NCBI GenBank assembly: GCA_964247055.1
Contig: OZ176050.1
Location: 5,332,001 to 5,396,000 of the forward strand
Reading direction: 5' to 3'
Source: Paragordius varius
Taxonomy: Eukaryota; Animalia; Nematomorpha
Length of the DNA stretch: 64,000 bases
Position numbers and translations under genes: made by a program. Positions 26,481-63,600 of the stretch are shown one piece after another (position 1 is the stretch's first letter; each line of letters opens with the position of its first letter). The notes under the pieces are model-generated. The model did not search any database. It was given only the letters and a program-made list of their open reading frames with translations, and was not told the DNA's origin.

Positions 26481-26851
26481 TTATTTTTGTTCTCTTTTCA
26501 TTCCGCCCAAACACTTAGGAGATTCAGTGAATTCAAAATTTTCCTGAGGACTTTTTGCGATTATAGAAAGTGCATGTACAGTATCTTGCAATTCTTCTGC
26601 TAAGATATCATTTATAATACGGTGTCTCTACGTATTAAATACGATCAAACCTTAATCAATGACAAATCGTTAAATTTTTCACTAATCACAACAATTTTGA
26701 AATGAGTATTTGAATCTAATTTTATATTACTTAAACTTTTTGGAATATTATGCATGTAACTTTCATTTATTACATCTAAATATTTGGGCTATATTAAGTA
26801 TATAAATACTTGTAACGCTTTTAAAATTTTTTGATAAATTTTATCTCGCAT
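26481..26851 (-). CDS. BOLA1: BolA-like protein 1 (101 aa), 4 exons with three ultra-short introns
   Basis: Exons 26851-26810, 26788-26737, 26715-26651, 26627-26481 give MRDKIYQKILKALQPKYLDVINESYMHNIPKNSNTHFKIVVISEKFNDLSLIKRHRIINDILAEELQDTVHALSIIAKSPQENFEFTESPKCLGGMKREQK. BolA motifs NES..H, THF, RHR, VHAL and the BOLA1-type SPxCLGG tail are present. The true start may lie further upstream. Confidence 0.9.
26628..26650 (-). other. 23-nt intron (BOLA1 i3)
   Basis: GTTTGATCGTATTTAATACGTAG; joins LSLIK to RHRII. Confidence 0.88.
26716..26736 (-). other. 21-nt intron (BOLA1 i2), 3n and stop-free
   Basis: GTTTAAGTAATATAAAATTAG; removal restores BolA spacing H-x-x-P-x-x-S-x-T-H-F. Confidence 0.65.
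26789..26809 (-). other. 21-nt intron (BOLA1 i1)
   Basis: GTATTTATATACTTAATATAG; if retained it ends in an in-frame TAG. Confidence 0.85.
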
Positions 26852-27337
26852 ATAAAAACAGATGTTCGCACACACTAAGGCAAGGCATAGTAAGAAAAGC
26901 CTCGCATCTCATACTTCTATATGTAATATAGTAAGGTAAGTTTGTGGAAATATTGCCAAGCTTTTAGATAAAAAAATAGGATTGGAGTATCACAAATATT
27001 TCCTAAAAACGACTCATATTTGTTTTAGTTTGATTTTTTTAGCATATAATCATTATTTCGTATTTAAAAATTTTCAGCTGCAAATTTGGTCCAGTTGGTA
27101 GCTTTTTGAACAAATAAATTGTTGAAAAACTTAGTTTCTTACAAAAATTATGATAGTATTATTAATGATCCCCTAAAATCAAAATCAAAAATCTTAACGA
27201 TTACATAAAACCACTGAAGATTGCCACTTTAATATGTCAACAGTAATCAATAGATCAAACTGTTATTACTCTAATTGAAGAATAAAAATTAATATTTTTT
27301 GCCTCCAAACAAGATAATGTGGGATTTAATCAAATAC

Positions 27338-27490
27338 CTATACAGAGTGGCCATTTAAGAATGAATAATGTAATAATAAAATTGAAATAAACAGCTACAA
27401 AGAAGGAATTATTCTATAACCAATTGGATTTAAAAAATAATTATCAACAATACTTTCAAATGCGCCTCAGTCTGGATTACCACCTCTTAC
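27338..27490 (-). mobile_element. Tc1/mariner 3' end fragment
   Basis: TA-CAGAGTGGCCATTTAAG terminus; the minus strand carries GGCGCATTTGAAAGTATTGTTGA (GGHFE-like transposase tail). Confidence 0.45.
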
Positions 27491-27699
27491 AACCAATTAT
27501 ACGACGTTTCTTAGGTAATACCTTCAAATGATAAATTCATAGGTGGGTTTAACTCCCACGTTGACAGTAATGGTCAAGACTAAATGAGAATATATGGTGA
27601 AACGCTTTTATTAGCCGTAACAAAGAAGGTGTTACACTATTAGAATACTGTTCATCTATTATTAGATTTACTGCAATACCCTCTTTACAACACCAGTAA

Positions 27700-28600
27700 A
27701 TAAATTAATAAATTCAAGAAATCAATATGGGAGATTACATTAACCTCTCCAAGATAGAAAATTCATCAAACGCCCCAAAGCTCATCCAGCTAAACAACAA
27801 ATCGTAGTAATTTAACAAATTTATACCTTATTGACCATAAACCCAAAATAAATTAGGAAAAGCATACCTACGTAATGGAGAACTTCTCACAACCTATAAA
27901 TATACAGCGCTTAGCCCTAACCACCATCTGAACAGGATGATCTTTAGAACACTCCCAAATAAAACAAAATTTTTGTGGCAGAAAGGAAAAAGGTAAAATT
28001 CAAATTCGGTGGTGGTCACAATCTATGAAACATCTGGCTTAAACGTCAAAACTACAAAATATGGTAACAAACAAAAGATAAAAGAGACCTGGATATCAGA
28101 TTAAATAAAAATTGATAACAAGCCATCAATATTTCAGCTAACAAAACAGCTTTGAATTTGGCTTAAAACTTTATTAGGTTATAAATATTCTCAAGATTTT
28201 TCGAACGATAAATTTAATTAACTATAATATAAAAAACATTAAACAAGATGGCTACATCAAAGAGAAACATGAACACCTAGTAACTGCATGGACAGACGTA
28301 AGCAATGTTTGGACCTCATATTACCGAGAGGAATTTACAGAATTACAAGATTTTGAGACAATGGACCACAACAACAATTGGTCCCCGGTCATTGATAACA
28401 TACGATCTAAGAGATCCTTTAACCAAGCTGGAAAAAATAAAGCACTGGTTCATCAGCTACGACATGATCAAAGCTGTAACCCAATTTATTCCACATCAAT
28501 ATATTGAATCTCATCTTGTCAACAAATCGCTCTAAAAATTGGTCAATAGCACCATAATATTTATTTGTAAAAACAAGGGAGACATGCTCGATTATGCTCC
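27700..28600 (+). pseudogene. Possible decayed Penelope-like reverse transcriptase relic
   Basis: 28305-28535 reads ..LTKLEKIKHWFISYDMIKAVTQFIP, loosely like the PLE RT motif LVSFDVxSLFTNIP. Heavily degenerate. Confidence 0.3.
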
Positions 28601-28945
28601 CCCAGACCGCTCAAGTTGTGGGACATTCATTAAAAAATTTTGAATCTATGAAATTGAGATTAATCACTATTATAAAATCTTTTTATGCATAAAAACCAAG
28701 AAGCCGCACATTCGATGTAGTTTTTATTGTAATAAGATTGCAGAACTATATAGCCAAAAATAAAAAATTGCATCACATTTGCACAAATCTACAAGTACCC
28801 AGAAATTTTAAAATTTACACTACGATACATCAACGTAGATGAATGTATAATCAAAGTATTACAATGGTGTACATTAAAATAAACTGCTCAAATAAACATG
28901 GCACAGCAGATCCAAACAAGTTTTGGCTTCATCAAGGATCTATCT

Positions 28946-29571
28946 CAGTGATAATCAAACCGCGGCCCTATAAGTGCTTTTTTGTGGCCCTGAATTTTTT
29001 ATTTGATTACTTATTTACAGTATTAGCATTTGCATATTATATTCCATTTGCACCCTGGGAGTGTCCTTAAACTCTTCAAATTGATCTTTAAAATTTTTAA
29101 ATTATTTAACCATAGTTTCTGCATGTATTTTTATTGTTGTTTTGAACCTAATTTTCTTTATTTATCATATTTATTCATTTAAAAATAAATTTTTTTTATT
29201 CAAATACCACTTTTTTTGTTTCAAAATTTTTTTTCAATTTAACAAAATTATTACTTTATAAATATTTCAACAAAAAATTGTGATTAATAACCCAGATTAC
29301 ATATTTAATTTTACGTGTTAAAATTCTATTAATGATTAAAAATGATGTGATTTAAAAGTTTATGTTAAATGAAGAAAAAAGGTTAAAAATGATAAAATAG
29401 ATGAATGATACATAATTTGATTGATAAAAGTTAACGAAACAAAAATGTTAAAGGACCAACGGTTACTTTTGAAGTGCAAATGGTATAGTTATGTAATAAT
29501 TCTCGGTATTATATGGTGCACGGCCCTTGAAAGAAAAATTCGGCCCTTCAATTTTTTGGTGAGTACCGCAG
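28946..29571. mobile_element. Non-autonomous Buster hAT (same family as 40589-43545), containing a nested MITE
   Basis: Perfect TSD ATCTATCT (28938-28945, 29572-29579; central TA). Left CAGTGATAATCAAACCGCGGCCC; right TTTTTTGGTGAGTACCGCAG. Confidence 0.85.
29042..29485. mobile_element. TA-flanked MITE, short-TIR relative of the 22.5-kb foldback
   Basis: Termini TA-T(T/A)CCATTTGCAC / GTGCAAATGGTA-TA. The interior aligns with 22962-23460 (e.g. CCTAATTTTCTTTATTTAT..CATTTAAAAATAAA, AAAGGACCAAC). Confidence 0.75.
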
Positions 29572-29948
29572 ATCTATCTCGTTTTAATAATGTATGTGCA
29601 TCAAAAAATATAAAAACAAAGCCACCTTAAAACTTATCTAAATAGACGACATCGTGCTCACAGAAAAATCAATGAAGGTATAAAACAATACATGAAAATT
29701 ACACCTAGAAAATAATTCTAGTGAAAATTGTAATTAATACATAACTTAAATTTGATGACAAACAACCCTTTTAATCAATATAGAGGTACAAATGTTCAGC
29801 ATCATCGAATTATCTAGAAAAGTGTTTTTATAAGGTAGTTTTATACCGTATGCTTCAAAATACCATAAAATACGCTAACATAATTTTGTAAAAATATAAA
29901 TTACAAAGTATGCATTTTTCAAATATTTTTTTATATGTTTTAATCTAG

Positions 29949-29987
<39 letters not shown>

Positions 29988-30880
29988 AAAAATTCTTATC
30001 ACGATACATGCGTTTATTTTATATACCAGACCAATTTTGAAGGGTGAAAAAAATTTGATATATGCGGACTCCAAATCTATAAATCAAAATTTTATTAAAA
30101 TGTTGTTTATTTATATTAGTACATGATATATTTTTATAATATTTTTGGATTGAAGCATTTAGCTTTATCCAAAAAAATTCTCTCCAATATAATGTGTTCA
30201 AAAGTTGTCAGAATCCCTCGTATGCTTCAAAACTAAATACGCTATGATCCATTTATTAATCAGAGTATATATTTTTATTAGGATTTTATTGCACCCCCGA
30301 TTTTTACACTATGTATTAGCTGTGGTATCAGTATTAGGGGTGAAACCAGGTCAATCTAACTTGATAGTTTCAGTCTGTAAACTCGTCAATCCCCTTCACA
30401 TCAAAAGCCTTCATGGGTCATTGATAAAAAAGCTTAATTTTTTCATCATTATCTTAAAAATTATAATATCCTTTTAACATTATTTCTTTATGATTTATTA
30501 TGAATAAAATTTTAGTAAAATTTCATATTAATGATTATGTTAAAATATTATTCTAAATTACAAAAATATAATAAGGTTTCGTTTTTGTATAAATATTATT
30601 AAAAAACAGTTTTTGGGAAAAGATTGCTTATGTAAGCATATGGTAGTGATAAAGAAAATAAAACTCTTTTCCCCTATTTAACTTTTATATTTTATGGACA
30701 ACTTTACTTTACGATATACTGAAGTAAATATTTTTATTTTGCAAAGGATAAGATCCGTTTTTTAGTTCAAGTGTAACTGGTATATTATCATTATCAGTTC
30801 TCTTATATTTATTTGGTGATCCATACCTGTCGAGCAAACCGTATATCGTGCATATGATACCGATTACTTAAAGGTGCACC

Positions 30881-32923
30881 ATGCTTAAGAAATTAATAGG
30901 AAAAATTACTTTTGCTTCAACTTTATCTAATAAATCGCCTATCGATGGAATTGATTCTGTTTTAAAGTTAATAAAACATCCCAAAGATAAAGTAATTATT
31001 AAGAAAGATTTGATAGATAAAAATAATGAAATAAACTCTGTTTCTCAAATAAAGTATTTTATATAAATAATTTAGAAATATAATTGAAGGGTTTAAATAT
31101 GATCGGAAGAAAGCAATTAAGAAGGAACCTATATCAGAAAACATACTAACTGAATCTGGTCAAAAGCATACAAAGTATGTATTGAACAAGTTTTACAATA
31201 TTTCGAACTTATTCGAAGAAGAGGATCCCATCAAAACAAAGTTATCATTGCAATATATTACAGCCATATGAGACAAAAAATTGACCTATTCGGGGCTAAA
31301 CCTCTAAATATATTTCTTAAGATGAGTGGCGAACGTAAAGCAGAAGATAGTGACATATATAATGTTTGGGATGAATTGCATCAAAAAGAATTAAAAAATA
31401 ATATTAGACAAGAACCCATAAATGCCTACGAAGAAACAATGCGAAAAACCGAAGAAGGTAGTCTTTGGAAATTTCCTATTGACAATGAAATTGGTAATAT
31501 TTTAGCTTTTATTCTGATAGTTTTTTTTTATAAAAAAATAAAAAAAATACTCAGTGATTTTTTGATTAACTCAACTTTATCTGGTTGTGAATCGGTAATT
31601 TCAGATAACTTTAGGTTATTAAATTCGCTTCTCTTTACAATTTCGTGAAAAGCATTTAGATAGTTTTTGGGTTAAAAAATAATATATATATATATATATT
31701 TCAATAAATTTCTCAATATTTTGGATGTTTCTTAGACAACTTTTAAAATATTTCTATTAATCTATCCCTTTAAAACATGATTAGCTAATGATCATTATAT
31801 TTCGCAAAAGTATACCTTTATATACATTTTTTTGAAACATCTTGGGTATGCTTCATATTACCATATTTTGGGTTTAATAAAATTTATACTGGCTAGCATA
31901 ATTCGTCAAATGACAAATGCATAAATTAAACACCTCTTATATCATATTAAACATCTCGCAATGAGTAGGGATGGAAAAAATATAAATTTTACTTAAATAC
32001 TGTTTCCTAAATCATTGTTTGCCAACAATGGGATTTTAAAAATTTACTAGAATTTTGTAGTACTCAATAGTAAGAGATTATGATAATGAATGAAATGATA
32101 ATGCGGTTAACAGGTTAGAAAAAAATTTAATATTTCCTATAAGCCAAAATTAAAAATTGCATTTTTGTACCACATTCAAATAAACTCAGATACAAAAATT
32201 TAAAACACGTCAACGAAATCTTATTGCTCAATAAGAATGATACTAAATGCGAGGCACTTACATTAGCTCAAATGTCGCACTTTGAAATCTATTATTGTTT
32301 TTATGCGGTAAAGGATTTTAATTTTTTAAATAATTATCATTTATTTACTATTTTACAGCTTACCCAATATATCGCTTTATAAAATGGTTTAATTCTTATA
32401 TAATTTTTTTTGATTATCTGTATTGAAGTGGGAGCAGCGTATATTTTTTACAAACTTAAGATGCTAAAAATTAAAGCATTTACCGCATAACAAGTTTGAT
32501 TCAAATTTAACGCCTCAAGGTATCGCTTAAAATTGTAAAATCTTTATGTATAATATTTTGCTTTTAGGTATATCATTATGGGATATATGTAAATAATCGT
32601 TGACGCATTTTTTTCTATTGTATTTAATTTTATTTGACAATTATGTAAAAGAAAGATAAAAACCTTATTAGCCTGTGCATTTTTCATATTGATATTCATT
32701 TTTATAAAGGTTTTAGCTACCAAATGATATATAATTTATAAACAACTTTTTTGGTGGGCATCGCGTGTATTTTAAAATTATTTTTCAGTTTTTTGAATAT
32801 CGTGACACACTATAATTACGTAATTTATTATTGAAAATCCAATGTAAGTAACAGTATTATATATTTATTCCAGCTAATATATTTTTTGGCTATATGATGC
32901 TGAGATGTATTTTTTGAATTACA

Positions 32924-32995
<72 letters not shown>

Positions 32996-34225
32996 ATATA
33001 TTATTACACTAGATAACAAATTTTGACTTTTTTTAACTGCCATACTTGTAAATTTAAAATTTATTTCATTAAAGCACCTAAATACTATATCTAAAAAAAT
33101 TGGTTTAACCCGTTAATTTTTTTTAATTAGAGTTTATCGATAATTTTTGGCCCCGATTTAACATTTAACTTTAAATTTTTAAAATTAAAAGTTTATAGAG
33201 CCATGTGGAAAAACTGTATCTTTCGAATGGTAGTTAGTCATTTAAATCAATCTTATTAAATGTTATTTGGGTTTGTATGGTCAAAATTTCCGACCCTTAA
33301 ATAAGTCAAAATTTTTTACAGACAAACCAAAAAAAATCCTATATATTATTTTAATATCATTATTAGGGTTACATTATTGAAAAAATTTTTTTAGAAAATA
33401 ATTTTGGATCAAAATTATTATTATCAAAATTATTTTACTAGTGGATACTAAAAGTATAATAACTGTAAATTTATTGCATTGTTAAAAAAATAAAAAAATA
33501 CCTTAAACCTTGTCTTTAGTCTTTGTTTCGAAATTATAAGCTTCATAAAGGAATTTATATTGATTAGATGGTAATTTTTTAGAAAACAAAAAACTTAAAA
33601 ATAGTAGTTTTAAATGGCATAAAATAAATAAGTGTTTTAATAAAAAAAACTTTCCTGTGTTGTCTTTTTTGGTTCATTGCCATCTAGACAAAATTTGAGC
33701 TATTTTCCATTAGTTTTCAAAATATATTAATTAAGAAAAACGCTATCGCTTCGGTTTCTCGCTTACTATGTCCAATATTAACTATCGATGTAAAACTTAT
33801 TAGTTTGCATTTTATAGAGTTTTAATTACTCTTTCAAATATATTTTAAAGGGCATTTGTTGTATACTTTCAAAGAAAAACATTTTTTATTAAAATTTTGA
33901 TAAAGAGGGCACATAATTAAATAAAATAAAATTATACAAATTTCTAAGTTGGAATTATAATTTTTATTTCACTACTGTTAAAATGATAGTAAATATCATA
34001 AAATGCAAAAAACTCGAGTGGCAGAAATACTCTTTTTGTGCAGAAACGCCTTATATTAAGTATTTGCAAACAATTATTGGCTATCATGAAATGCAAAAAG
34101 TTTGTACGTAAAAAACTAAAATTCTTTATAGCATATTATTAAACATGCAAAACGGCTATTTTGCCGCTAAAACCCCTGTTTCATTTCAAAGTTTCCAATT
34201 TTATCATTAATGTTTTTTGAGGGAT

Positions 34226-34270
<45 letters not shown>

Positions 34271-35018
34271 TTTATTTAAATAGTTTTTTAATGTGTTAAA
34301 TTATCAAGTATATTTTATGTAAAATGGTTTGCTATCAACGAATACAGCAGTTTTTTAATTAACATTAAATATAATTAATATCAAAGCAGAAAAATAAACA
34401 CTCCTTTTTTATAGTTATAGTTATAATGTTATAAATGGGTTATCTCACAAAAGAGTACGTACAAAACAACGCTTCCCGTATAGAACTATATGAAAGCGTA
34501 ATAATTTATTATTAATTGAATGTAAATATTTTTTTACAAAACTTTTCAGATGTGGGGGAAGAAAAAAATGTTTCATTTCAAGATCATGTTTTTATTCACG
34601 ATTATTTCCTTGAACATTTACAGCATTTGAATTCGAATCACATTATGCATTTACCAAACCTTAAACATTTTATGGAGCTTGTTTGTGTTGGCCTTGGGCG
34701 CAATCCGCACTATACTGTTCAAGAAAAGCGTCAGATAGTTTTATGGTCTGACATATTTTGTTAAAATTGTTTAAGCCAGTACTTATATATTTTTGGTAAT
34801 ATGGACCATTATAATCTTTATTAAGCATTAAAAACAAAGTTTTGTTTTAACAACAATTTAATCCTATATATCAGAAGTATCACAATCTTTAGTTTAAAAT
34901 GTATTTACATTTATACTTATTACTTAGGTATGTCCAATACTTTGAATCAAAAAAAGATATTATTCAAGCATCCCTTGATATTCAAGAGAGTGATACTCAA
35001 CAAAGCGCAGTCATTTAA
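30881..35018 (+). CDS. MRPS31: Mitochondrial ribosomal protein S31 (mS31), 284 aa, 5 exons
   Basis: Exons 30881-31053, 31076-31240, 31264-31493, 34550-34745, 34928-35018 (855 nt). C-terminal domain LFGAKPLNIF..WDE..EEGSLWKFPIDNE..FQDHVF..HFMELVCVGLGRNPHYTVQEK..WYVQYFESKKDI matches the MRP-S31 pattern. Confidence 0.9.
31054..31075 (+). other. 22-nt intron (MRPS31 i1)
   Basis: GTATTTTATATAAATAATTTAG; removes an in-frame TAA and restores frame. Lies in the poorly conserved N-terminal region. Confidence 0.7.
31241..31263 (+). other. 23-nt intron (MRPS31 i2)
   Basis: GTTATCATTGCAATATATTACAG; restores frame into the conserved domain. A longer alternative from 31175 has the same phase. Confidence 0.6.
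32922..33002. repeat. (TA)n microsatellite (others at ~29950, ~34225, ~42625, ~49915)
   Basis: Long imperfect TA run. Confidence 0.9.
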
Positions 35019-35116
35019 TTATATTTATTCATAATTTTACCGATACATATGTCGATATAATGTTTATATTTGGAATATCATACAACAATAATAATTTTAT
35101 AGATTGTGTTTATTAA

Positions 35117-36529
35117 TCACTTTTTAAACCATTTAACACACATTTTTATTGCATTACGACGTAGGATAGAATTACCGAAAAATATGAAATATGGAAATAT
35201 ATAAAACTTAAGAAAAATCAAAAGCACAGTTATAGTGCGCAAAAAAAAGCTTCGTGGTTCTTTGTCTTTGAGAGCACCAGTTAACCAAGCCCCCCTTGCT
35301 AATGTGATGATAGCCCATGGTAAGGTGGTGAACAACATTATAACACTTATCAAATTGGTAATGAAGGTTAAATTTTGATTTCTTTCACGTATGATTCCAG
35401 CTTTATCTTCTGAATACGTTTTTAAGTTTTTCAGAGTATAATCATGTTTCATTGATTTATTTGATGTGTGCCCATCTGTGATGGACAGAGCATTTTGTTG
35501 ATGTTTTTTGTCAATATTTTCTGGCTCTGAATGAATATTCGGTTTTATGTCCGTCTGTAACGTGGTTGGCCTCTTATTGTTTATTAAACCGAAAATTCCT
35601 GATGATTTTGATGTACGACTAGGTGTAACGCTTGCTGATAAGGCCTGATGGATTTTATTGCGTTTTCGTAAAAATATTTTTCCACAAACCAAATTTATAA
35701 TAATGATTATACATGGCAAAAGATATACAATGAAGATGTGAGCGGGATCAAAAAAGTTTCGACTAAATTTTATGAGTTGACGGTTAATTTTATCAGTATA
35801 GTTGATTGGTGATAACTTTACAAATATGATTGGTGTGTGGTTTTCGAAAATTCCATTTTGTTCAATTTTACAAAAGTATCTCCAAACCTGATTCAAATTA
35901 AAAAAGAACCAAAACGGTATATTTATTGAACAAGCGAATACGATGATGATTAGCAAGATTGTAAAAAGGAAAGAATCCTTACTATATTTCGTACGATAAA
36001 AAATCGGTAATTTTATTGCAAAAACTGTATCGAACGATAAAAAAACTACCAAATAATTTAGGATAGTTATAAGTATTTGATCTATGGCCCATTGTATTTT
36101 TACCATCCATGATATTACTAATATGCCAATTTGCTTATTGACATTCAACAAGTTACAATCTTGTTTAACATTATATTTAAGGATGAAAAAAAAGTAGTAC
36201 ATTGGCCAAAATAGCATTAAACAACAAATAATTAAACATGTCATAGTTATGGATTTCAAAAAGAAACGGATTTGTATTTTGTATTGTACAGGTTTTCCAC
36301 AATCTCCCGATCTACTTCCAAGCGCCCAAAATAAAACAAAATTTCCTAGAATACCTAATGGGGCAAAAACAAGTATAATTATACTTGCTGTATGATATTC
36401 GTTAAGTTTTGAAGAAGCTAATGTATCAGTATATGCTGTAAAAGATGACATTAGGTTTTGATAAAATAAAATTATAACTACAAAAAATAATTGTTTCCTA
36501 CCACATAACAACTTTGAAAAAATTGGCAT
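35117..36529 (-). CDS. Single-exon class A (rhodopsin-like) GPCR, peptide-receptor/chemoreceptor-like
   Basis: 470-aa ORF with seven hydrophobic segments: TM1 LGILGN; TM3 end SFDTVFAIKLP (DRxxAIxxP-like); TM4 INIPFW; TM5 YLLPC; TM6 TTLPW. The start may be Met at 36451. Confidence 0.85.
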   Translation of the reverse strand: MPIFSKLLCGRKQLFFVVIILFYQNLMSSFTAYTDTLASSKLNEYHTASIIILVFAPLGILGNFVLFWALGSRSGDCGKPVQYKIQIRFFLKSITMTCLIICCLMLFWPMYYFFFILKYNVKQDCNLLNVNKQIGILVISWMVKIQWAIDQILITILNYLVVFLSFDTVFAIKLPIFYRTKYSKDSFLFTILLIIIVFACSINIPFWFFFNLNQVWRYFCKIEQNGIFENHTPIIFVKLSPINYTDKINRQLIKFSRNFFDPAHIFIVYLLPCIIIIINLVCGKIFLRKRNKIHQALSASVTPSRTSKSSGIFGLINNKRPTTLQTDIKPNIHSEPENIDKKHQQNALSITDGHTSNKSMKHDYTLKNLKTYSEDKAGIIRERNQNLTFITNLISVIMLFTTLPWAIITLARGAWLTGALKDKEPRSFFLRTITVLLIFLKFYIFPYFIFFGNSILRRNAIKMCVKWFKK

Positions 36530-37053: not shown

Positions 37054-37136
37054 TAGCACGGGTGGGGTTTGAACCCACGCGGACATACGTCCATTGGATC
37101 TTAAGTCCAACGCCTTAACCACTCGGCCACCGTGCT
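37054..37136 (-). tRNA. tRNA-Leu (anticodon TAA)
   Basis: AGCACGG/CCGTGCT acceptor stem; A box TGGCCGAGTGG; anticodon arm TTGGA-CTTAAGA-TCCAA; long variable arm; B box GGTTCAAACCC; oligo-T terminator downstream. Confidence 0.97.
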
Positions 37137-37214
37137 TGTGATATGAGTCCTCTCGTTTAATTTTATATTTCCAAAAAAGGTTTCAAGGTTCCTTATTTTA
37201 ATTAAAATGATCAT

Positions 37215-37516
37215 ATGAGTCGCTACTGGAAGGCCTCCTCTTCTCACATTGGATTATTGTCTAAAACAATTTTAGTAAGAGATAACAAGGTAGAGGAATC
37301 TTTTCAGGCGTTAAATCGGTTAGTTTTTTATTATTATTTTATAGAATTTTAAACCAAGAAAAAATAATACCTGCAATACGAAATAATAGATATTTCGAAA
37401 AACAACGACGCATAAGATTGGCTTTTGAATTTTGTAAATCTATATATAATTATGATATGAATCGTAAAATTCAATATGCTATTCGTAAAAATCGTCCTTC
37501 TCCATGGCTTGCATAA
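37215..37516 (+). CDS. MRPS21: Mitochondrial ribosomal protein S21 (bS21m), 91 aa, 2 exons
   Basis: Exons 37215-37318 and 37345-37516: ..SKTILVRDNKVEESFQALNRILNQEKII..RYFEKQRRIRLAFEFCKSIYNYDMNRKIQYAIRKNRPSPWLA*, collinear with animal MRPS21. Confidence 0.88.
37319..37344 (+). other. 26-nt intron (MRPS21 i1)
   Basis: GTTAGTTTTTTATTATTATTTTATAG; joins ALN-R-ILN. Confidence 0.88.
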
Positions 37517-37524
37517 TTAGAAAT

Positions 37525-38815
37525 ATGATAATATTCCGTTTAAATAGAACCTGGGCTATATATCCTCCAATTAATATTGATCAACATCGTCCAAACGATA
37601 TACGACAACCATTAAATAATTATACACCTGAAACCGATGATACCAATATAAATAATGAGAATAAAATACGAGATGTTTCAGGCCTTAACCCGGATTTAAA
37701 AAACATGTTTAAGAGTAATATTGTTCCACCCAAAGCTAAATTTGATCATCATTTACGACGTAATCATGTCCGAAGCATTTATTCAAATTATGGTTCTAGT
37801 TCAAGTTTTTGTTTTCTAATGTTTAAGATGTTGACCCATCCGTGTGTTGGCCCACACTCTCTGAAATTGAAAGAAAACAAGCTGACTCGAAAATTATAGA
37901 AACTCAATATTTTGAAGAAATGCAAAAAATAAATGAAAAAAACATTAGGGTTGCCAAAGCAGTTCAGCAACGTAGATCATTGGTAATTATTATTTATTTA
38001 CCTTAATCTCTTATAATTTTAAAAATGTACATCTGCATATTTTAAGGAGACATATATGTGCATCTTAATATATGATATTATTTTCACCTTAAGTTCGTCC
38101 TTCGGCAAATTAAAGTCTCAAAATTAAACAAAATTTTTGCTTAACGTATTTCTGACATAAGTTTTTAAAAGACTTATTGTTACCATTTTTTATAATTTTA
38201 GCACCTAAAATAACACCCTCAGATTTTATCAAATAAGCTATTGACATTTTTAATGTATCTTCATAATTATGGAATTTAATTAACAATTAATAACCTTTAT
38301 TTACAGTAGAATTTAATTTTGAATTTTAACCTGGTCGTTTTTTGACTTTCTATTTTTTTGTTTTGATATTTTGCAAAATTCTAAAAAACTTATATGATAT
38401 AGAGAGCAAGACGCCGGATTCGTACATTATGCATTTTAGCGGGCGAGTTTTAATGCTTTTAAGAATTTAATTATACAGCTTATTTCAATAAAAAATGAGA
38501 AAAAATAGACTACTCTATAATTTATATTAGATTAGGGAAAACATGAAAAAAATGTCACAATACATTGAACGGTACATGGATCGGGGATCTCAAGCAGCTA
38601 CCAAACAAGATGAGGTTAAAAAACAACGCCAACACGAAATGATGGAAGAGGCCCGTGAATATTTTGGTTATAGGATTCAAACACATGACCCCAGATTTCA
38701 AAAGTTAATGGAGGAACGGGAAATGGCTCGGAAAAAAATGCAAAGGCAGGAAAAGAAACGACAACAAGAATCGCGCAAGATTGCGGCCCTTGATATCCTG
38801 AAAACTGTTAAATAA
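37525..38815 (+). CDS. GADD45GIP1: GADD45GIP1/CRIF1, mitoribosomal protein mL64, ~239 aa, 3 exons
   Basis: Exons 37525-37804, 37828-37982, 38531-38815. YGSSSNVDPSVCWPT, IRENMKKM and EEAREYFGYRIQTHDPRFQKLM match the CRIF1 pattern. An in-frame alternative ATG lies at 37504. Confidence 0.88.
37805..37827 (+). other. 23-nt intron (mL64 i1)
   Basis: GTTTTTGTTTTCTAATGTTTAAG with CTAAT branch-like motif; removal gives an ungapped match to YGxxSxVxPxxxWP. Confidence 0.88.
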
Positions 38816-38844
38816 TAATAGATTGCAATGATAATTACTGCTTT

Positions 38845-49958: not shown

Positions 49959-50015
49959 ATCATCATAAATTTTAAATATTACCAGGCAGGTGAGGAAGGC
50001 AACAGAAAATATCAT
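48576..50015 (-). CDS. Orphan secreted glycine-rich protein, 266 aa, 3 exons
   Basis: Exons 50015-49983, 49543-49405, 49204-48576 (801 nt, one frame). Signal peptide MIFSVAFLTCLAIGIQA; GGF/GGW-rich tract; Arg/Gln-rich segment; Met-rich C-terminus with two Cys. Confidence 0.85.
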
Positions 50016-54651: not shown

Positions 54652-54779
54652 TGTTCTATATTAACTCGTAAGATGGGTCCTTTTTTAAAAAGCCGAGATA
54701 GAGCGGATTTTTTATATAAATTATAATTACCAAATAAAATATTTTGGCATTACTGTTAAAATTATTGGGTAAAGTTTAA

Positions 54780-55856
54780 CACTTCGATTTAAATTGGAGC
54801 ATCTAAACACCTACTAAGTTTAAATTAAAATTTTTAGAAAACTACTGAAGGGAGCGGCCCCAATTTAATTTTATGCTTCCCTAATCTCAATTATATAAAT
54901 AAGCTAAAATACCAAAATAAAATTTCGATTCGAAAAAAAAATTTGATGTCAAAATACTTCGACGCCATTTTTATTAGGGTATTAAGGCTAATATTTTATT
55001 CTAATCACATCTAACATTAAAGAAAGAGAAAAAATGGTTTATTTATATTTTTTTTCAATTTAGATAATGCACCCATGTCACGTTTAATTTTTTATCTATG
55101 GGTTTTACCTTTAACACTTGGATGAAACACATTCATTTTTGTCCTTCGATTCAAATTGGGGTAGTTAAATACCCCAGGCCTGTTTAAAATTAAATTCTTT
55201 AAAAAATATGGAAGGAATCGAAACCATGGCAAAATTTTGCACTTTTATAACATTAATAAACCGAATAAAAAATTTTATTCAAAAATACTTGATATTACTT
55301 ATTTTAATCTAAAATGAGCAATAAAAATTTCGTCAACGTGACATGTGTGCAGTAAAATTGAAAAATACTACAAAATACACCGCTTTTTCTATTTCCTTAG
55401 ATGTAATTTAAATAAAAAATTAGCTTTAATTTTACCCTTAAAATTAAATGAAGACGATATTTTGCAAAAATTTTGTAAAATCGAAATGGCGTCGAAGTAG
55501 TTTGACATGGAACTTTTTTTTCAAAACTAAATTTTTTTTGAATATTTTGGCACATTTATATAATTTTTATTAGGATATAAGCATAATTTTAAATTGAAAC
55601 CGTTTCCTTCAGTAGTTTTCTAAAAAGCCTAACTCAATAGTCTGGGGTATTTGGATACCCAATTTGAATCGAGGTGTTAAATAAGTAATATCAAGTATTT
55701 TTAATTTTTTTATATATTCCTTTAATATTATATAATGCAATTCGCCATGATCTCGATTCCTTCCATATTTTTTAAAGTATCTAAATTTAAACAGGCCTGG
55801 GGTATCCAACTACCCCAATTTGAATCGACGGACTGAAATGTATGTGTTGCTAAGTG
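54780..55856. mobile_element. Family-A MITE interrupted by a second, oppositely oriented copy (55115-55676)
   Basis: Outer TTAA 54776-54779 and 55857-55860; inner TSD TTAA 55111-55114 and 55677-55680; the host sequence resumes after the insert. Confidence 0.85.
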
Positions 55857-55984
55857 TTAAAGCGTATTTATCTATATTTGAAGCATGAATGATTTAATAT
55901 ATTTTTGAAACATACTACTATAATTTGATGCTGCTGGAAATTTCTATCAAAATTTTGTTAAAATTATTCCGCTATCAAATTTAA

Positions 55985-57053
55985 CACTTGGATACAACAT
56001 ATTCATTTCAGTCCTCTGATTCAAATTGTGGTCTTTTTGGACCCCAGTCCTGTTTAAATTTAAATGCCAAATTAAAACCATTGCAAAAATTTGCACTTGA
56101 TGCGCCCAAATATAAAATGATACATGGATAAATCTCAAGGCCAAAATTTATATGTACATTAGCTAAATATAAAAATGCAAAATAAACCACTTCTTCTATA
56201 TCACTTCGATTCAAATTGGGGTATCTAAATACCCCAGACTAAATTTGAGTTACGATTTTTAAAAAACTACTGAAGGAAACGGTCCTAATTTAAATTTATG
56301 CTTCTATCCTAATAAAAATTATATAAATATGCCAAAATTTATATATAAAATTTTGTTTTGAAAAAAAAGCTCCATGTCAAACTACTTGGACGCCATTTTT
56401 ATTTTACAAAATTTTTGCAAAATATCGTCTTCATTTAGTTTTAAGGGTAAAATTAAAGCTATTTTTTTATTTAAATTAAATCTAACATTGATAGAAATAG
56501 AAAACGCGGTTTATTTTGCATTATTTTTAAATTTTACAATTGCACACATGCCACATTGAGTAAATTTTTACCTTTCGGTTTTAGCTTAAAATAAGTAATA
56601 TCAAGTATTTTTGAATAAATTTTTTTATATAATTCGGATTATTAATGTTATATAAGTGCAAAATTTTGCCACGGTTTCGATTCCTTCCATATTTTTTAAA
56701 GAATTTAATTTTAAATAGACCTGGGGTATTTAACTACCCCAATTTGAATCGAAGGACTAAAATGAATATGTTGTATCCAAGTGATATACCAATGTTGATG
56801 ATCAATATAAAATTTTGCTTTTTCAGCGGTAGAATATACGATATTTCGCATAAATGTTGTAAAATAAAAATGGCTGCGAAGTTTTTGATATGGACCTTTT
56901 TCAAAACTTAATTTTTTAGATATTACAGCTTATTTATAATATTTATTAGGATAGAACCAAAATTTAAACTGGAACCGTTTTTTCAGTAGTTTTTTAAAAT
57001 ATTAACTTAAATATAGTTTGGGGTTACTAGATACCCTAATTTGAATCAAAATG
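55985..57053. mobile_element. Family-A MITE interrupted by a second, oppositely oriented copy (56202-56783)
   Basis: Outer TTAA 55981-55984 and 57054-57057; inner 4-bp TSD ATAT 56198-56201 and 56784-56787. Confidence 0.85.
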
Positions 57054-57683
57054 TTAACTTATATTTGATGCGAAAGATTTTTTTTTAAACGAATTTCTGA
57101 TGCAAAAATTTCAGCAGTATGATGCAGAAAAATTATTTTGGGTATAATATTGATATTATTCAGCTATAATTGTTTATCAAAAAATATCCAATTATTATTC
57201 TTTTAAAATATTTACACCATTTGGAGTAAGCATCAAAATACCATGAACCTCTTTTTACCATGATTTTAATAATATTTGAATAGTATGGATTTACCAAAAT
57301 TTTTTTTTATAAAATTATTCTAAAAAGCGTTAACGAGCAACGGCATTGCGTTTATTTTCGAAAAACTTGACTAATTGAGGGTCAAATTTAAAACCTACAG
57401 AGCCTACGTTTAAATATATAATCTTTGTCTTCTTTTAATATATTCATGACATAGTTTAACTTTATATTTAGGAATGAAGTATCTAGCTCTTACCAGAAAA
57501 TTACATGTGCGGTAATTTTGCAAATTTTAGATTGAAAGCGCCACCAAAACACAAATAACCTTGCCCAAAAGCAAAGTTTCTAATATCTTAATACATTTTT
57601 AGATCACAATATATATAATTTATTAGGTTATATCGTACCACACGGTTACATCAAGCATACAACGTTTTTGTGTGTGCCTAAGC

Positions 57684-60600
57684 ATGACTGACCGTACTTT
57701 TGAATCGCTAAAAGGCGATATTTCTGATAATACCTTAAAAGCCATAAAAGATATTGGATATGCGACAATGACAGAAATTCAATATAAATGCATTCCATAT
57801 TTATTGAAAGGAAAGTAATTATTATATTTAAATTTTAAGAGATTTAGTTGGCTCTGCAAAAACGGGTAGTGGGAAAACCTTAGCCTTTTTAGTGCCCGCT
57901 ATTGAATTGATTCATAAATTAAAATTTTTGCCCAGAAATGGCACAGGTTGTATTATATTGTCACCCACTCGTGAACTTTCTATTCAAACATTTGGGGTAT
58001 TACGTGAACTATTGAAATATCATTCACATACTTTTGGCCTAATAATGGGCGGTGCTAATAGAAAAGAGGAAAAAGAAAAATTGTCGAAAGGCATCAATTT
58101 TATTGTCGCTACTCCTGGCCGTTTGTTAGATCATATGCAAGTATATATTAAATAAATTTTTTTTAGATTGTTTTAATCTTATAATCGATTATTAAGAAAA
58201 TTTTTTTAATAATTTAGTAAATGCTCCTCTTTTTAATTAAATTTCTGGGTAGATTTTTATATTTATAAACATACAAGAAGCTAAAAAGGTATAATCATAG
58301 CTCTCAGTCAATCCAGTCCATATTTTAACTATTACCGCTAAATATATTTATCTTTTTTTTTCTGTTGCCCAATACCCTTTTTTAAAATATTTTAATTACT
58401 CTTTTACCTACCAAATTGATCTCCGAATTGTTTTTTTTTCAAGTCGCCTTAAGATTTGAAATTTTTTACTGGATTTAGTATATCTATTATTTAATTTACA
58501 ACTAGAGCCAAAATTTTTCATATTGTATATTTGTTTTAGAAAACATTTGATTTTTAAAATTGTTTTTTTTTGCAATAGAAACTTTAAATAATTTTGGGAC
58601 ATGAATTTTTATAATTTATTATATTCATATAGTTAAATTTGAAATGTCTTTCTTAATTAAAATTATCGAGAAATAAACATTACATTATCATTACTATCAA
58701 ACTAGCCTTTTTTGATTTTTACAATTTCAAGTTGGATTATAATTATTCCATTTTTTGATTAATGGATATTATGGTAAAGTGGGTGGGCGTCCGACTCATG
58801 TTTTGTGTCTATGAAGTTCAAACTCCGTAAATGCAGATTTTTTCATAATCACTATCAGCCCTTTAAAGTCTTTGTAAAGTTTTTTGGAAATAAGGAAAAA
58901 GCTATAAAATGTTAATTTTTTCCATAAATTTTGAAAATCAATAATTCTTCTAATCATAGTTTTATAAAAAATTTCTTTTTACTGTTTTATTCGCATAAAT
59001 TTAGAAGGAGGTCTTTTTCTATGTTAGAATGAATATTATCATTCATTATTATTTATCAGGGATTGATCCCGATTTAAACATTTTTTTTGTTTCCAATTCC
59101 GGTTTCACTGTTTTCGGTCAAACAGTTTTTCTGTCTATTTTTAAAATTTAGTGATAGCCCATTATTTTGATACAATGCGGATCGAATGTGTAAAATATAT
59201 GAATATAAAGATGAAATTTTATGTTGTTTTTTGAAAAAAAATCGATAAAAAACTTTTAAATATGGTGGGAAAAACGAAATATTTAACGTTTACTACCTTG
59301 TGCCAAGGAATATTGTTTAAAACAGTTTCTCTTCTAACCCCCTGTTTTTTGTTCATTACGATATTAAAAATATCCCTTAATACCATCTTTAAAATTGGGC
59401 AAACATTATAATCAAAAAAGATTAGTTTTTAATGTGATTAAACAAACGCCGGTCTTTATACATATTTCTCTTATGGGATATATTTTTAATAATCTTTAAT
59501 AATTAAAACATCTGCATCAAAAAAATTTTTATAGCAAAAAAACAATATTATTTTTACAGTATGACATAATATTGGTGGATCTTAAATAAAAAATAAAGTT
59601 GGAATATTTTTTTCCCAAGGAAATATGAAATTGTGAGGGATAAATGAATTTGTAATGAAAATATGTTATATATAGTACCCTCGCAAAATATCGCTTTTTA
59701 AGGGTAGAATTATTTGTTTTAAGGAAACACCATAAAAGCTTTATCACTCGTCTGTACAAGCTCACAATGTTCATGGATCGTAAAATTAGGATGATTACTA
59801 AAGTTTTTATGAAATTTATTTATACATAGAAATTGGCTTTCGATTTGAATATCAATAAGACTATTTAATTTTTTATTATGTTATAAATATATATATGTAA
59901 TTTCCTAAAATTAGAGTTAAGAATCTCTATATTATATAATATTTTTTGTTTTTTGGCAAATTTCAAAAAAATTTTGTTCACCAAAGACACCGACTAGATG
60001 TTTACCACTTTGAAGCATTTTTGATTTATTTATGGTATAACCTATTATTTATATGATATAGTAATTATAAAATAAGCCAAAATAAATTTATTTGTTTAGT
60101 AAAGCCTTTTATATTTAATATAACAAAATTTTACAGTCAACGCCAGAGTTTACATATAAAAATCTGCAATGTTTGGTCATTGATGAAGCCGATCGCATTC
60201 TTGACATTGGATTTGAAGAAGATTTAAAACAAATTATCCGATTGTTGCCAAGTAATTTTATAACCCCATAAAGTCAACAGGAAAAGAATAAATAATTTCA
60301 CTCTTTTAATTACCTCCTTCTTCCTTATATAATGGCGTTTCTATATATCTAAAATTATATTTATTTTGTAAGTATTATTATCAAAAAGTTTCTTTTCTGG
60401 TTTTAGCATTTTTGTCCCATTTTAAAATTTGGTTTTTTTTTTCAATTTATACCTTCGTGACTGACTGCATTTGATAATTAATTTTGTTCAAAAATATTTT
60501 AACATCCTAATTACTTATCATTAAATAGCCATATTGCATTAGCAAAAAGATAAAAGATATTCATGACTCCTAAAAAGTTTTGATTTGGGATCACAAGATT

Positions 60601-63600
60601 GACTTCAATTTTATGATTATACTAGCTTATTTTTGAATATATTATTTGTTAGAACAAAGGCAAACAATGCTGTTTTCAGCTACCATAACGAACAAAATTG
60701 AAGCTATCGTTAAATTGGCATTACAGCATGATCCACTTTATGTCGGGGTTGATGATGACAAAAAATTGGCTACCGTAGAAGGATTACAGCAGGTTAATTT
60801 TCACATACATATAATGTTAAGTTGTCATTTATCTCCTTATTTTAATTGTTACCATGTCATAATTTCATCGTTTGGCTATATCCTTTTGTAATTGTTTTTG
60901 TCAAACATTTCAATTTAATGTTTAGGGTTACGCAATATGTCCATCTGAAAAACGATTTTGTCTCCTTTACACTTTTCTTAAAAAGTATCAAAGTAAAAAG
61001 ATTATGGTCTTTTTCAGTTCCTGCATGTCAGTCAAATTTCATTATGAGCTCCTTAATTACGTGGACATCACATGCGAATGCATTCACGTATATTACATAA
61101 TTTTATAAAATTGAAACTCTAGTAGTTTAATTAAAAAAATTCTAAAAAATTAATTTATAATACAAAGGAAAAAGAGACTATCCTTTACCAAACTACCTTA
61201 TTTAAATATTTTTTATGCTTCTTATTATTATTATTGTTACATGTCATTTTTTGGTTAACTTTAATATTGTTATAAAATGTTAATTTTTATATTTCATAAT
61301 TGTTAACTTAATTTTTCATTGATGTTGTTAAAAAGTATTTTTACCATTATTTATATGCTATGAATAGTATCAAATTTTTAAATAAAAAATTGATTTAATG
61401 ATCAAGATGAAGCCAGTATATCATTATTTTAAAACGGTTTAAGATGTTTATTAAATATATATATGGCCAATCAGGGTAGAGGGTACATCAAAACAATAAA
61501 GGAATAGAGAAAACTTGTTTTTAATGAAAAAAAAAATGTTTATTAGTTGCCTAATATGTTTGACAGGGCCAACAAAAACAGATGAAAAGGAGTGATACCT
61601 TTTTCAAGTTTGTGCAAGCTGAATCTGGCATTCTGCTTTGCACAGATGTTGCTGCCCGTGGTTTAGATATACCATGTGTAGATTGGATCGTACAATACGA
61701 TCCCCCAGATGATCCAAAGGTATTTTAAATATAAATTTTTATTTTGTTGTAAATGCACTCACTACGTATTAAAATAGTTTTATCAATATTGCCATATGAT
61801 AGATACAACAAATAGCATTATTATTCTTATTATTGGTAATAGCCAAAAATGAATACAATAATTTCAAGCGGCGAAAATTTGACTCTTTAATAAATTTATA
61901 ATTATGTTCTTTTATTATTCACGATGTTAATACGAATCTTATTTAATTCCATTCGTCGCCACCCACACAATTTATACCAATACTATTAGTCTTTGCTGTG
62001 AATGCTATCTTTTAGTATTTAATATAAAACTAGCACATTTTACTACACTGTAAATTTTATAAAAGAGTGAGGTTATTATTTACACAATATTTTTTGAATG
62101 TGCCACCATATCCATGAATATGACTATGTTAAATAAGCTAATACATTGTAAAAATATGTTTCTACACCGCATGGAACGATGGTGCATCTATTATTTAAAT
62201 AAACCATAAATTAATTATAAAGCTAGATTATTCTTAAACTAGAACCCCTTATTTATCGGAATCATATATATAAATATAACCTTCTTTTTAACTGCTAGTT
62301 TTGAGTTATAATCATTTTTGTCTAATAGTAAAGTATATATTTTTTTCCATAATTTCTGACTGAAAGCATATTTAATAATTGATCTTAATTGAGTTTAAAG
62401 ATTTCTATATATATCGCTATTTATATATGTCATTTAAGGCATATAATATCATTTATTATCATTTTATAATACTTGTGCTTGTCACCCTTTTAGATTATTA
62501 CTTTGAGGATTTGATTCTAGCATTGTTTTGGCATATTATTACAGCGTACAGTTTAATGTACCTTGTTATCCGTTTTGTTATTATATTTCATAATGACTTC
62601 ATCTCCATTTAATTAAATAACTTGGGTGTTACTCACGTTTCACTATGAATCTTTCAACTTATATTTCTATGTACTTCAATATTTGCCCATGGCTTTGTAT
62701 TTTATTCATTCCTATATATTTTACATAATATATAGGAATACATACACCGAGTAGGTCGTACAGCCCGTGGATATGTCATTAACGAAGAAAAGAAAAACGA
62801 AAGTTCAACAGCACTCAAAACACAAACAGGAAACGCCATTTTAATTCTAAGACCGGATGAAGCTGGCTTTTTGTTATATCTCAAAGAAGCCAAAGTTGAA
62901 TTAAATGAATATGAATTTAACTGGAATAAAATTTCCGATATACAACAACAGGTTATACCATATTTTATCATTATTGGCTTATTATTTCGAACCATAAAAT
63001 GAAAAAAATGTCGTTAATGGGAAATCTTTAACTAAAAGTTGTTTCACGTCAGATTTTATTGTATGAATTTTCTTCTGATATAAGAATTTATTATTTTGTG
63101 TAGACTTTAAATAATTTTAATATTTTTTGTATGACTTACATATTGCTACAAATTGGTCGTTTTAATTTATACGCTTACTCTTTTTAACATTAACAAAATA
63201 TTTGTTAGTTATATTTTTAGCTTTTACCATATTTTTAGTTCGAAGAACTAATTGCATCAAATCATTATTTGCATCAATCAGCAATTAAAGCGTTTACATC
63301 TTTCATACGCTCCTATGCATCACTGAGTTTAAAAAAGGTTTTTGATGTTCAGACGCTAGATTTGGTTGCTGTTGCTAAATCATTTGGATTTACCAATCCA
63401 CCTTCTGTAGATTTAGGTAAATGCATTTTAACATTTTATAGGTGTATACTATTCCAAAAAATCAGAAAAGCGCAAAAGACTTGAAAATCCAAAACATTCA
63501 AATCCTTCAGTCAAGAAGAAAATGGGAATACTTAAAAAAATGGATCATGAAACAAAGAGTAAAAAATTTGGAAAGGGACGTTCCAAATTTTGTCGATATT

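Follow-up and report, generated by a model that had tools for sequence, protein, structure and literature searches.

Known Short-Intron Systems

In the literature searched, animal introns of fewer than 30 nt were reported only from myxobolid myxozoans and dicyemids. Of 51 animal genomes in one survey, only those of myxobolid myxozoans and Dicyema contained introns below 30 bp, which the authors associated with parasitism and a smaller body (PMC13644364, 2026); parasite genomes often shrink partly through intron shortening (PMC13644364). Nematomorpha were unmentioned in this 51-genome survey (PMC13644364), and literature searches for Nematomorpha together with intron length found no report. Flatworms possess a longer class of microintrons, which default annotation settings overlook (PMC6530080).

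The window analyzed here, the whole stretch of DNA of 64,000 nt, carries nine segments of 21-26 nt in five nuclear housekeeping genes (Table 1). These micro-introns are very probably genuine GT-AG (U2-type) spliceosomal introns, belonging to a shrunken minimal-intron class of a nematomorph and standing at old positions. They would add a third animal lineage that splices introns of fewer than 30 bases, and of these lineages it would be the first whose genome is bulky and rich in repeats.

Table 1. Micro-introns, their host genes and one long intron of the same locus (positions within the window).
Feature	Position	Strand	Length	Phase	Termini	Remarks
BOLA1 micro-intron 1	26789..26809	-	21 nt	0	GT-AG	
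BOLA1 micro-intron 2	26716..26736	-	21 nt	1	GT-AG	
BOLA1 micro-intron 3	26628..26650	-	23 nt	0	GT-AG	
MRPS31 micro-intron 1	31054..31075	+	22 nt	2	GT-AG	
MRPS31 micro-intron 2	31241..31263	+	23 nt	2	GT-AG	
MRPS31 ordinary intron 3	31494..34549	+	3,056 nt			same pre-mRNA as the MRPS31 micro-introns
MRPS21 micro-intron	37319..37344	+	26 nt	2	GT-AG	
mL64 micro-intron 1	37805..37827	+	23 nt	1	GT-AG	
DDX18 micro-intron 1	57815..57839	+	25 nt	2	GT-AG	immediately upstream of the P-loop motif
DDX18 micro-intron 8	63417..63441	+	25 nt, or 49 nt via an acceptor 24 nt downstream	1	GT-AG	
BOLA1-type gene	26481..26851	-				4 exons, 101 aa
MRPS31 gene	30881..35018	+				5 exons, 284 aa
MRPS21 gene	37215..37516	+				2 exons, 91 aa
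mL64 (CR6_interact) gene	37504..38815	+				3 exons, 246 aa
DDX18/HAS1 gene	57684..63602	+				9 exons found, 518 aa; more exons upstream possible

Inventory, Signals and Size Classes

A preliminary description of this DNA had listed nine GT-AG segments of 21-26 nt, and each was recovered at the position given in Table 1, as a single occurrence and with GT and AG at its ends (9/9). Their removal restores the reading frame, as had been claimed, leaving all five coding sequences open from ATG to stop, and retention produces a premature stop or a frameshift in eight of the nine cases. The ungapped alignment to orthologues that had also been described was exact for eight of the nine segments; for DDX18 intron 8, the frame is kept whether 25 or 49 nt are removed. 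In all, three micro-introns have RNA support (the third of BOLA1 and both of MRPS31), and five more are supported by exact collinearity with orthologues, namely the first two of BOLA1, that of MRPS21, that of mL64 and the first of DDX18.

The five genes contain nine introns of 21-26 nt and nine of 133-3,056 nt, with none of 27-132 nt, a division that describes the 18 introns of one window; half of the introns in the window (9/18) are thus shorter than 30 nt. Eight of the nine micro-introns lie within the first 52% of their own coding sequence, and several are adjacent to each other (three in BOLA1 and two in MRPS31).

GT..AG pairs spaced 21-26 nt apart are common in the window (1,210 on both strands), so that such termini alone are no proof of an intron. 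The micro-introns had been characterized as almost pure A/T, which proved overstated, their A+T content being 0.70-0.92 (mean 0.83) compared with 0.77 in the ordinary introns. The same holds for the YTAAY-like motifs, as a YTRAY sequence with its A located 5-11 nt from the 3' end was found in four of the nine, no significant excess over shuffles (P = 0.08). The 5' signal consists of GT followed by A or T, with a G at +5 in two of the nine micro-introns. In the ordinary introns of these genes the signals are weak and A/T-rich to the same degree.

RNA and DNA Evidence

Three public runs were compared: X11, an RNA-type run; X4, a DNA-like run of the same sample; and X1, a DNA run of another sample. 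X11 behaves as RNA in that its coverage is confined to genic regions and in that it links 31493 with 34550, skipping 3,056 nt; at this junction, MRPS31 intron 3, the contig match ends at 31493 and is followed by 30 letters identical to 34550-34579. X4 and X11 are assigned to one sample, and the SNPs of X11 are common to X4.

In X11, exactly 23 nt are absent at BOLA1 intron 3 (26628), with 104.7 of 104.7 depth, and exactly 22 and 23 nt at MRPS31 introns 1 (31054) and 2 (31241), respectively, each with 132.9 of 132.9 depth. The joined forms of all three have a depth of 0 in both X4 and X1. RNA support for each of these introns (n = 3) is one assembled contig from one run, which shows that the spliced form exists, and an unspliced form could coexist with it. 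All five BOLA1 and MRPS31 segments (26628-26809 and 31054-31263) are kept ungapped in the DNA contigs, namely records 1 and 7 of X1 and records 17 and 21 of X4. The transcript check proposed in the preliminary description was therefore borne out for three of the nine segments, with exact spliced junctions in RNA and retention of the segments in DNA of the same sample.

Homology Evidence and Alternative Junctions

Some of the six introns outside the RNA evidence might use other junctions or be partly retained, in which case the true set would differ from that in Table 1. This is rather unlikely. Frame-compatible alternatives are available for DDX18 intron 8 (49 nt), the mL64 intron (17, 29 and 35 nt) and BOLA1 intron 2 (15 or 45 nt), and the homology evidence bears on them gene by gene.

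BOLA1 intron 1 contains an in-frame TAG if retained. BOLA1 intron 2 is the only micro-intron that is a multiple of three and free of stops, so that its retention would add seven residues in frame, and the X11 RNA contig terminates at 26715, the exact edge of this intron; both features favor a different junction or retention. Against them, a transcript-like contig of a relative (X6) is colinear with the spliced BOLA1 model across introns 1 and 2 and fits the 21-nt solutions of both without a gap. At BOLA1 intron 3, the match of exon 3 to the Pfam BolA profile closes at position 47, and that of exon 4 opens at position 48. In MRPS31, the Pfam MRP-S31 profile is matched at positions 158-231 on the 5' side of the ordinary intron 3 and at 234-286 on its 3' side.

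In MRPS21, exon 1 corresponds to residues 3-27 of human bS21m and exon 2 to residues 29-84, and the single residue between them is accounted for by the split codon. For mL64, a profile built from 23 full-length homologues placed the 23-nt variant first and ungapped (193.2 bits), ahead of the variants of 17 nt (183.8 bits), 29 nt (182.4 bits), 35 nt (169.8 bits) and 68 nt (141.4 bits), the first two of which thus trail by 9-11 bits. This preference weighs against another mL64 junction; in its favor, Gordionus mL64 has two annotated isoforms whose acceptors lie 6 nt apart. When single small exons of MRPS21, mL64 or MRPS31 were compared with Pfam and PDB, most had no match. MRPS21 exon 2 gave no candidate in a database of 5.8 billion proteins, which means that this database contains no RNA-derived protein of the species.

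The DDX18 intron 1 junction is crossed by 66 homologues, 48 of them gap-free, and its sole frame-compatible alternative would remove the P-loop motif, which argues against that alternative. The same intron shares its position and phase with introns in three contigs of unrelated eukaryotes (L002, L003 and L004). Searches with DDX18 exon 2 gave best matches of 78-82% identity under a length filter that shut out full-length relatives. DDX18 intron 8 lies two residues beyond the end of the CTE_SPB4 domain, and the C-terminus obtained after its removal (..KFCRY-stop) is similar to that of DDX18 from another eukaryote (..QFSRH-stop); judged from frame logic, this intron may be of 25 or of 49 nt.

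Genome Context and Nematomorph Relative

The genome had been described as that of a non-streamlined animal, and this description held: coding sequence makes up only 10% of the 37-kb span (3,735 nt in 37,122 nt), there are introns of up to 3 kb, and transposons occur, with a hAT transposase among them; one repeat stands at about 150 times single-copy depth. The G+C content of the window is 27.7%, and the published value for Gordionus montsenyensis is 26.93%. Two further loci were noted in the window. An NWD1-like gene is located at 4.6-16.6 kb, and an ORF for a membrane protein of 470 aa (35117-36529) had no exact record and no homologue among 5.8 billion proteins.

The closest relative found appears to be the nematomorph Gordionus, as judged from two genes (mL64 and MRPS21). 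Among 1.84 billion representatives, the top match of mL64 was from Gordionus sp. m RMFG-2023 (41% identity, 171 bits), the others reaching at most 110 bits. MRPS21 is 70-77% identical, and here as in Gordionus it is the immediate upstream neighbour of mL64.

The orthologous genes of Gordionus sp. m RMFG-2023 (GCA_954871325.2), in the same order, also contain A/T-rich GT-AG introns. The MRPS21 intron measures 41 nt in Gordionus and 26 nt here, and the mL64 intron 44 nt and 23 nt, respectively, both at the same position and phase. The short introns of Gordionus are of 41, 42/48, 44 and 54 nt; the third shared intron has lengthened to 548 nt here, and one Gordionus intron is missing. Regarding the ancestry of the positions, a further check that had been suggested, homologous introns were found elsewhere for three of the nine micro-introns, comprising DDX18 intron 1 in the three eukaryote contigs mentioned above and the MRPS21 and mL64 introns in Gordionus. 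On account of the lengths of these two orthologous pairs, the micro-introns look like a further-shrunken minimal-intron class.

Mechanistic Interpretation

Canonical U2-type splicing is taken as the default reading. The micro-introns are very probably removed from the pre-mRNA like other introns, in transcripts that also carry introns of hundreds to thousands of bases, and represent the local minimal-intron class, of 41-54 nt in Gordionus and of 21-26 nt in this lineage. The ordinary spliceosome would presumably be used and would recognize the micro-introns by intron definition, through a 5' signal cut down to GT and a following A or T and through a branch adenosine situated a few bases 5' of the AG, without a separate polypyrimidine tract. 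The preliminary description had instead invoked a spliceosome of unusually small footprint, for which no support was obtained. Canonical snRNAs and U2AF are reported in other short-intron lineages (PMC13644364). The orthologous introns of Gordionus, at 41-44 nt, suggest that the usual minimal-intron class has shifted in length, rather than that a new mechanism has arisen. Nor was support obtained for an undescribed system; short 5'-clustered introns of about 37 nt are already known beside kilobase introns in flatworms (PMC6530080).

Departures from canonical splicing were considered in two forms. According to the first, put forward tentatively and regarded as improbable, the lineage compressed its minimal introns, once about 42 nt long, into the narrow range of 21-26 nt after the split from Gordionus-like relatives, while keeping kilobase introns, through altered early spliceosome assembly (e.g., without simultaneous occupancy by U1 and U2/U2AF, or independently of U2AF). 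The second, which is decidedly unlikely, holds that a modified or dedicated early-spliceosome route (without U2AF, SPF45/RBM17-like, or with altered U1/U2 snRNPs) arose after that split. A polypyrimidine tract cannot fit in the micro-introns, their 5' signal is as reduced as described above, introns of 22-23 nt and of 3,056 nt share one pre-mRNA, the micro-introns form a discrete size class in which none is shorter than 21 nt, and the Gordionus orthologues are about 20 nt longer, all of which would suit a modified route. The title of a preprint reportedly announces a U2AF-independent route for human short introns (10.1101/784868), and it was counted on the same side. The signals of the ordinary introns in these genes, just as weak and A/T-rich, weigh against such a route. 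So does the splicing of introns of the same size by myxobolids, Dicyema and Stentor, with U2 snRNA and U2AF conserved in myxozoans and a functional spliceosome in Stentor (PMC13644364).

Two readings that deny splicing altogether can be set aside. The probability that the segments are errors of assembly or sequencing, or small insertions in pseudogenes undergoing decay, is negligible: chance GT..AG pairs at this spacing are indeed frequent, but contigs from two DNA runs and two samples hold the BOLA1 and MRPS31 segments ungapped, which refutes an artefact for these five, three segments are exactly missing in RNA, and after removal each of the five genes has an intact, conserved coding sequence. 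Removal at the DNA level, as with the internal eliminated sequences of ciliates or programmed DNA elimination, is just as remote although short eliminated sequences of ciliates are of similar size, being contradicted for the sequenced sample by X4, where all five segments persist and the joined form has zero depth, and also by the GT-AG ends and by positions that correspond to ordinary introns of other species.

Significance

As genuine spliceosomal introns in a repeat-rich ecdysozoan genome with kilobase introns, the micro-introns show the same extreme that is known from compact genomes, so that genome compaction cannot be its cause. The Gordionus orthologues at 41-44 nt offer a close comparison for what sets minimal intron length, and if compression through an altered spliceosome were true, the two genera would constitute a natural experiment on the lower length limit of animal introns. 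All five genes would be broken by any gene-prediction or alignment program whose minimum intron length exceeds about 20 nt, and such breakage could inflate apparent gene loss in the phylum. Published BUSCO completeness for Gordionus montsenyensis is 71.6%; under the compression reading, part of the "missing universal genes" of nematomorphs would be annotation failure at such introns.

Comparison with Known Systems

Myxobolids and Dicyema japonicum are similar to the present case in having transcript-backed GT-AG introns of fewer than 30 nt, a 5' signal close to "GTa", no polypyrimidine tract, conserved intron positions and a parasitic host organism (PMC13644364; PMC6736024). They differ in that short introns predominate (myxobolid median, 22-27 bp; Dicyema mean, 38 bp), whereas nine of the 18 introns here are of 133-3,056 nt. 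Their genomes are also small (75 Mb in Henneguya and 67.5 Mb in Dicyema), in contrast to the ecdysozoan genome with 10% coding sequence studied here, which does not share the compact, reduced character of theirs. The microintrons of Opisthorchis felineus and other flatworms likewise form a distinct short class in genes that also hold a class of kilobase introns, and are 5'-clustered, mutually adjacent and frequently devoid of a polypyrimidine tract (PMC6530080); their lengths peak at about 37 nt, with a second peak at 90 nt (PMC6530080), compared with 21-26 nt in the different phylum considered here. Ciliates (Paramecium, average 25 nt; Stentor, 15-16 nt) match the micro-introns in length range, in GT-AG termini and in mostly giving a stop or frameshift if retained, but nearly all of their introns are tiny and their genomes gene-dense, whereas in this lineage two size classes occur within one pre-mRNA.

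Gene models and positions of the micro-introns

The nine micro-introns placed in five genes by the preliminary description were found to be correctly positioned, each beginning with GT, ending with AG and being single-copy within the window. The coding models of BOLA1 (101 aa), MRPS21 (91 aa), MRPS31 (284 aa), mL64 (246 aa) and DDX18 (518 aa) run uninterrupted from ATG through stop, and the gene names are backed by BolA, MRP-S31, CR6_interact and DEAD plus CTE_SPB4 matches in Pfam and, for the bS21m identity of MRPS21, by a PDB search. The 18 introns of these genes comprise nine of 21–26 nt and nine of 133–3,056 nt, with none of 27–132 nt. Since the A/T-rich window contains many GT..AG pairs at 21–26 nt spacing (1,210 over both strands), the case must rest on RNA and homology.

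Positions of the nine micro-introns in the window
Gene	Intron	Position	Strand	Length (nt)	Ends
BOLA1	1	26789-26809	minus	21	GT-AG
BOLA1	2	26716-26736	minus	21	GT-AG
BOLA1	3	26628-26650	minus	23	GT-AG
MRPS31	1	31054-31075		22	GT-AG
MRPS31	2	31241-31263		23	GT-AG
MRPS21		37319-37344		26	GT-AG
mL64	1	37805-37827		23	GT-AG
DDX18	1	57815-57839		25	GT-AG
DDX18	8	63417-63441		25	GT-AG

RNA and DNA evidence

Among the public sequencing runs, X1 and X2 come from sample S1, and X4, X5 and X11 from sample S3. X11 is a small run (24 million letters) containing 67% of the sampled words from 37200-37990, a mostly exonic stretch. When contigs of X11, X4, X6 and X1 were compared with 26440-32000, X1 and X4 covered genes, intergenic DNA and repeats evenly, and both therefore behave as DNA; X11 gave little coverage beyond BOLA1 and MRPS31, with just low-depth patches on repeats. 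The match of one X11 contig ends at 31493 and is followed by 30 letters identical to 34550-34579, so it is spliced over the 3,056-nt MRPS31 intron and X11 behaves as RNA. Exactly 23 nt are missing from X11 at BOLA1 intron 3 (depth 104.7/104.7), and exactly 22 and 23 nt at MRPS31 introns 1 and 2 (132.9/132.9 for both), the MRPS31 transcript thus losing its micro-introns together with the 3-kb intron. At the same three sites, in the same order, the joined form was absent from X4 (depths 102.5, 75.9 and 75.9) and X1 (375.7, 2,045.6 and 316.6), and gapless X1 contigs span 26440-27054 and 31039-31515. X11 and X4 are one sample by run record, and the individual's SNPs are common to both (e.g., 30899, 30997, 31016 and 31036). 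These three segments are present in DNA and exactly missing from the RNA of the same animal. The RNA support consists of one contig per site, which proves that the spliced form exists and says nothing against unspliced RNA. Excision at the DNA level and assembly error as sources of the segments are both contradicted by the same-sample DNA run X4.

Retention would introduce a stop or frameshift for eight of the nine micro-introns. The exception, BOLA1 intron 2, is the only one both stop-free and a multiple of three, its retention adding 7 residues; the X11 BOLA1 contig ends at 26715, the exact edge of this intron, and spliced and retained forms may coexist.

Three differences from the reference (31082 and 31137-31138) occur in the X11 RNA contig and are missing from the listed X4 DNA contig; these could represent the other allele or RNA-only changes. 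In the DNA runs, the stretch 29044-29600 has a summed word depth about 150–190 times the single-copy value (X1: ~63,000–67,000 vs ~350) and is a very abundant repeat family. Public run labels disagree with sequence identity: X3, labelled as another organism, contains 56–69% of the window's words, and X6–X10, filed under the same species label, contain next to none, X6 being clearly divergent.

Homology support

The X6 contig matches BOLA1 at 26747-26783 only; its loose ends and matched part, once translated, align without gaps to the model spliced at introns 1 and 2 (22 of 32 residues identical), and retention of intron 1 gives an in-frame TAG. At intron 3, the exon 3 match to the BolA profile stops at position 47 and the exon 4 match starts at 48. 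MRPS21 exon 1 corresponds to residues 3–27 of human bS21m (E = 1.6, weak alone) and exon 2 to residues 29–84 (E = 1e-10), so that exactly one residue remains for the split codon. For mL64 micro-intron 1, frame alone permits donors at −45, −12, −6, 0 and +6; against a profile of 23 full-length homologues, the 23-nt variant scored highest (193.2 bits, gapless), followed by variants of 17 nt (183.8), 29 nt (182.4), 35 nt (169.8) and 68 nt (141.4 bits). The DDX18 intron 1 junction is spanned by 66 of 120 homologues, 48 of them gapless against the spliced model, and the sole other frame-compatible solution removes the P-loop motif. DDX18 intron 8 is the weakest case: it sits two residues beyond the last conserved domain and the frame is preserved at 25 and 49 nt alike, the downstream frame being supported by a C-terminal end like that of another eukaryote's DDX18.

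Human and yeast DDX18 proteins carry a long N-terminal extension, which the present model lacks. At 57576-57602, some 80 nt before the DDX18 ATG, there is a GT..AG segment of 27 nt that contains a CTAAT-like motif; the gene may have further exons upstream or a micro-intron in its 5' UTR.

Comparison with Gordionus and origin of the introns

Among 1.84 billion representative proteins, the top match of mL64 exon 3 was a Gordionus sp. m RMFG-2023 protein from RefSeq. Over 242 residues, the full spliced mL64 shares 41% identity with this protein (171 bits; every other homologue at most 110 bits), and an N-terminal motif common to both is missing in the four other aligned homologues. In the Gordionus locus L006 (GCA_954871325.2), MRPS21 (70–77% identical) lies directly upstream of mL64, in the same order as in the window. 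G+C is 27.7% in the window, and the published Gordionus montsenyensis genome has 26.93%, with 63.8% repeats. Because the mL64 match, gene order and G+C agree with the Gordionus data, the animal is judged, on two genes, to be a nematomorph clearly distinct from Gordionus.

The MRPS21 micro-intron and mL64 micro-intron 1 match Gordionus introns in position and phase (26 vs 41 nt and 23 vs 44 nt, respectively), and the DDX18 intron 1 site also carries a phase-2 intron in three unrelated eukaryote contigs, L002 (363 nt), L003 and L004. These matches mark no fewer than three of the nine as old introns that have since become shorter. A phase-0 mL64 intron measures 548 nt in the window and 54 nt in Gordionus; the Gordionus intron of 42 or 48 nt, whose acceptors 6 nt apart yield two annotated isoforms (256 and 254 aa; L006 3276-3323), has no counterpart in the window mL64. 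The minimal-intron class appears to have shifted from ~41–54 nt to 21–26 nt after the split from Gordionus.

The MRPS21 stop (37514-37516) falls beyond the first mL64 ATG (37504), a second in-frame ATG, preceded by TTAG, lying at 37525; in Gordionus, 14 nt separate the two genes (L006 2984-3003). This tight pairing, kept across genera, suggests a dicistronic or operon-like unit. The opposite strand carries a tRNA-Leu gene (anticodon TAA; 37054-37136, minus strand) 78 nt before the MRPS21 start codon.

Other features of the window

A single-exon 470-aa ORF (35117-36529, minus strand), by appearance a multi-pass membrane protein, had no homologues among 5.8 billion proteins and matched no Pfam family. 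A large STAND-NTPase gene (4600-16600) has AAA/NACHT-like Pfam matches, ordinary introns and downstream ORFs resembling WD40 repeats by eye; hAT-type transposase ORFs (17090-18913) adjoin it. A 35-nt intron is possible near 4544-4598.

Splicing mechanism and known short-intron systems

The micro-introns start with GT followed by A (4/9) or T (5/9), have G at +5 in two cases, follow a final exon base A in six and end in TAG, AAG or CAG. Their A+T fraction is 0.70–0.92 (mean 0.83; ordinary introns 0.77). Four of nine contain YTRAY with the A placed 5–11 nt from the 3' end, with no excess over shuffles (P = 0.08). Eight of nine lie within the first 52% of the coding sequence, and every ordinary intron comes after them in four of the five genes. 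The evidence best supports ordinary U2-type splicing via intron definition, in which the micro-introns would be recognized with minimal sequence signal and without a polypyrimidine tract; myxobolids, Dicyema and ciliates are reported to splice in the same way. Conservation of U2 snRNA and U2AF has been reported in myxozoans, and a functional spliceosome in Stentor (PMC13644364). A spliceosome with an unusually small footprint, as the preliminary description had proposed, might, with lower probability, remove these introns instead.

In a 2026 survey of 51 animal genomes, introns below 30 bp were confined to myxobolids and Dicyema, and Nematomorpha were unmentioned (PMC13644364). The word "intron" is absent from the Gordionus genome preprint and from a comparative nematomorph preprint, and no literature on intron length in Nematomorpha was found. 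With these micro-introns, a known phenomenon extends to a further lineage, the nematomorph one; new here are the RNA proof, the tested nematomorph affinity and the orthologous Gordionus intron lengths for these genes. Flatworm microintrons have a similar architecture but a length peak of ~37 nt (PMC6530080), compared with 21–26 nt here, and the distinguishing feature that matters is that the genome hosting the present micro-introns is not compact.
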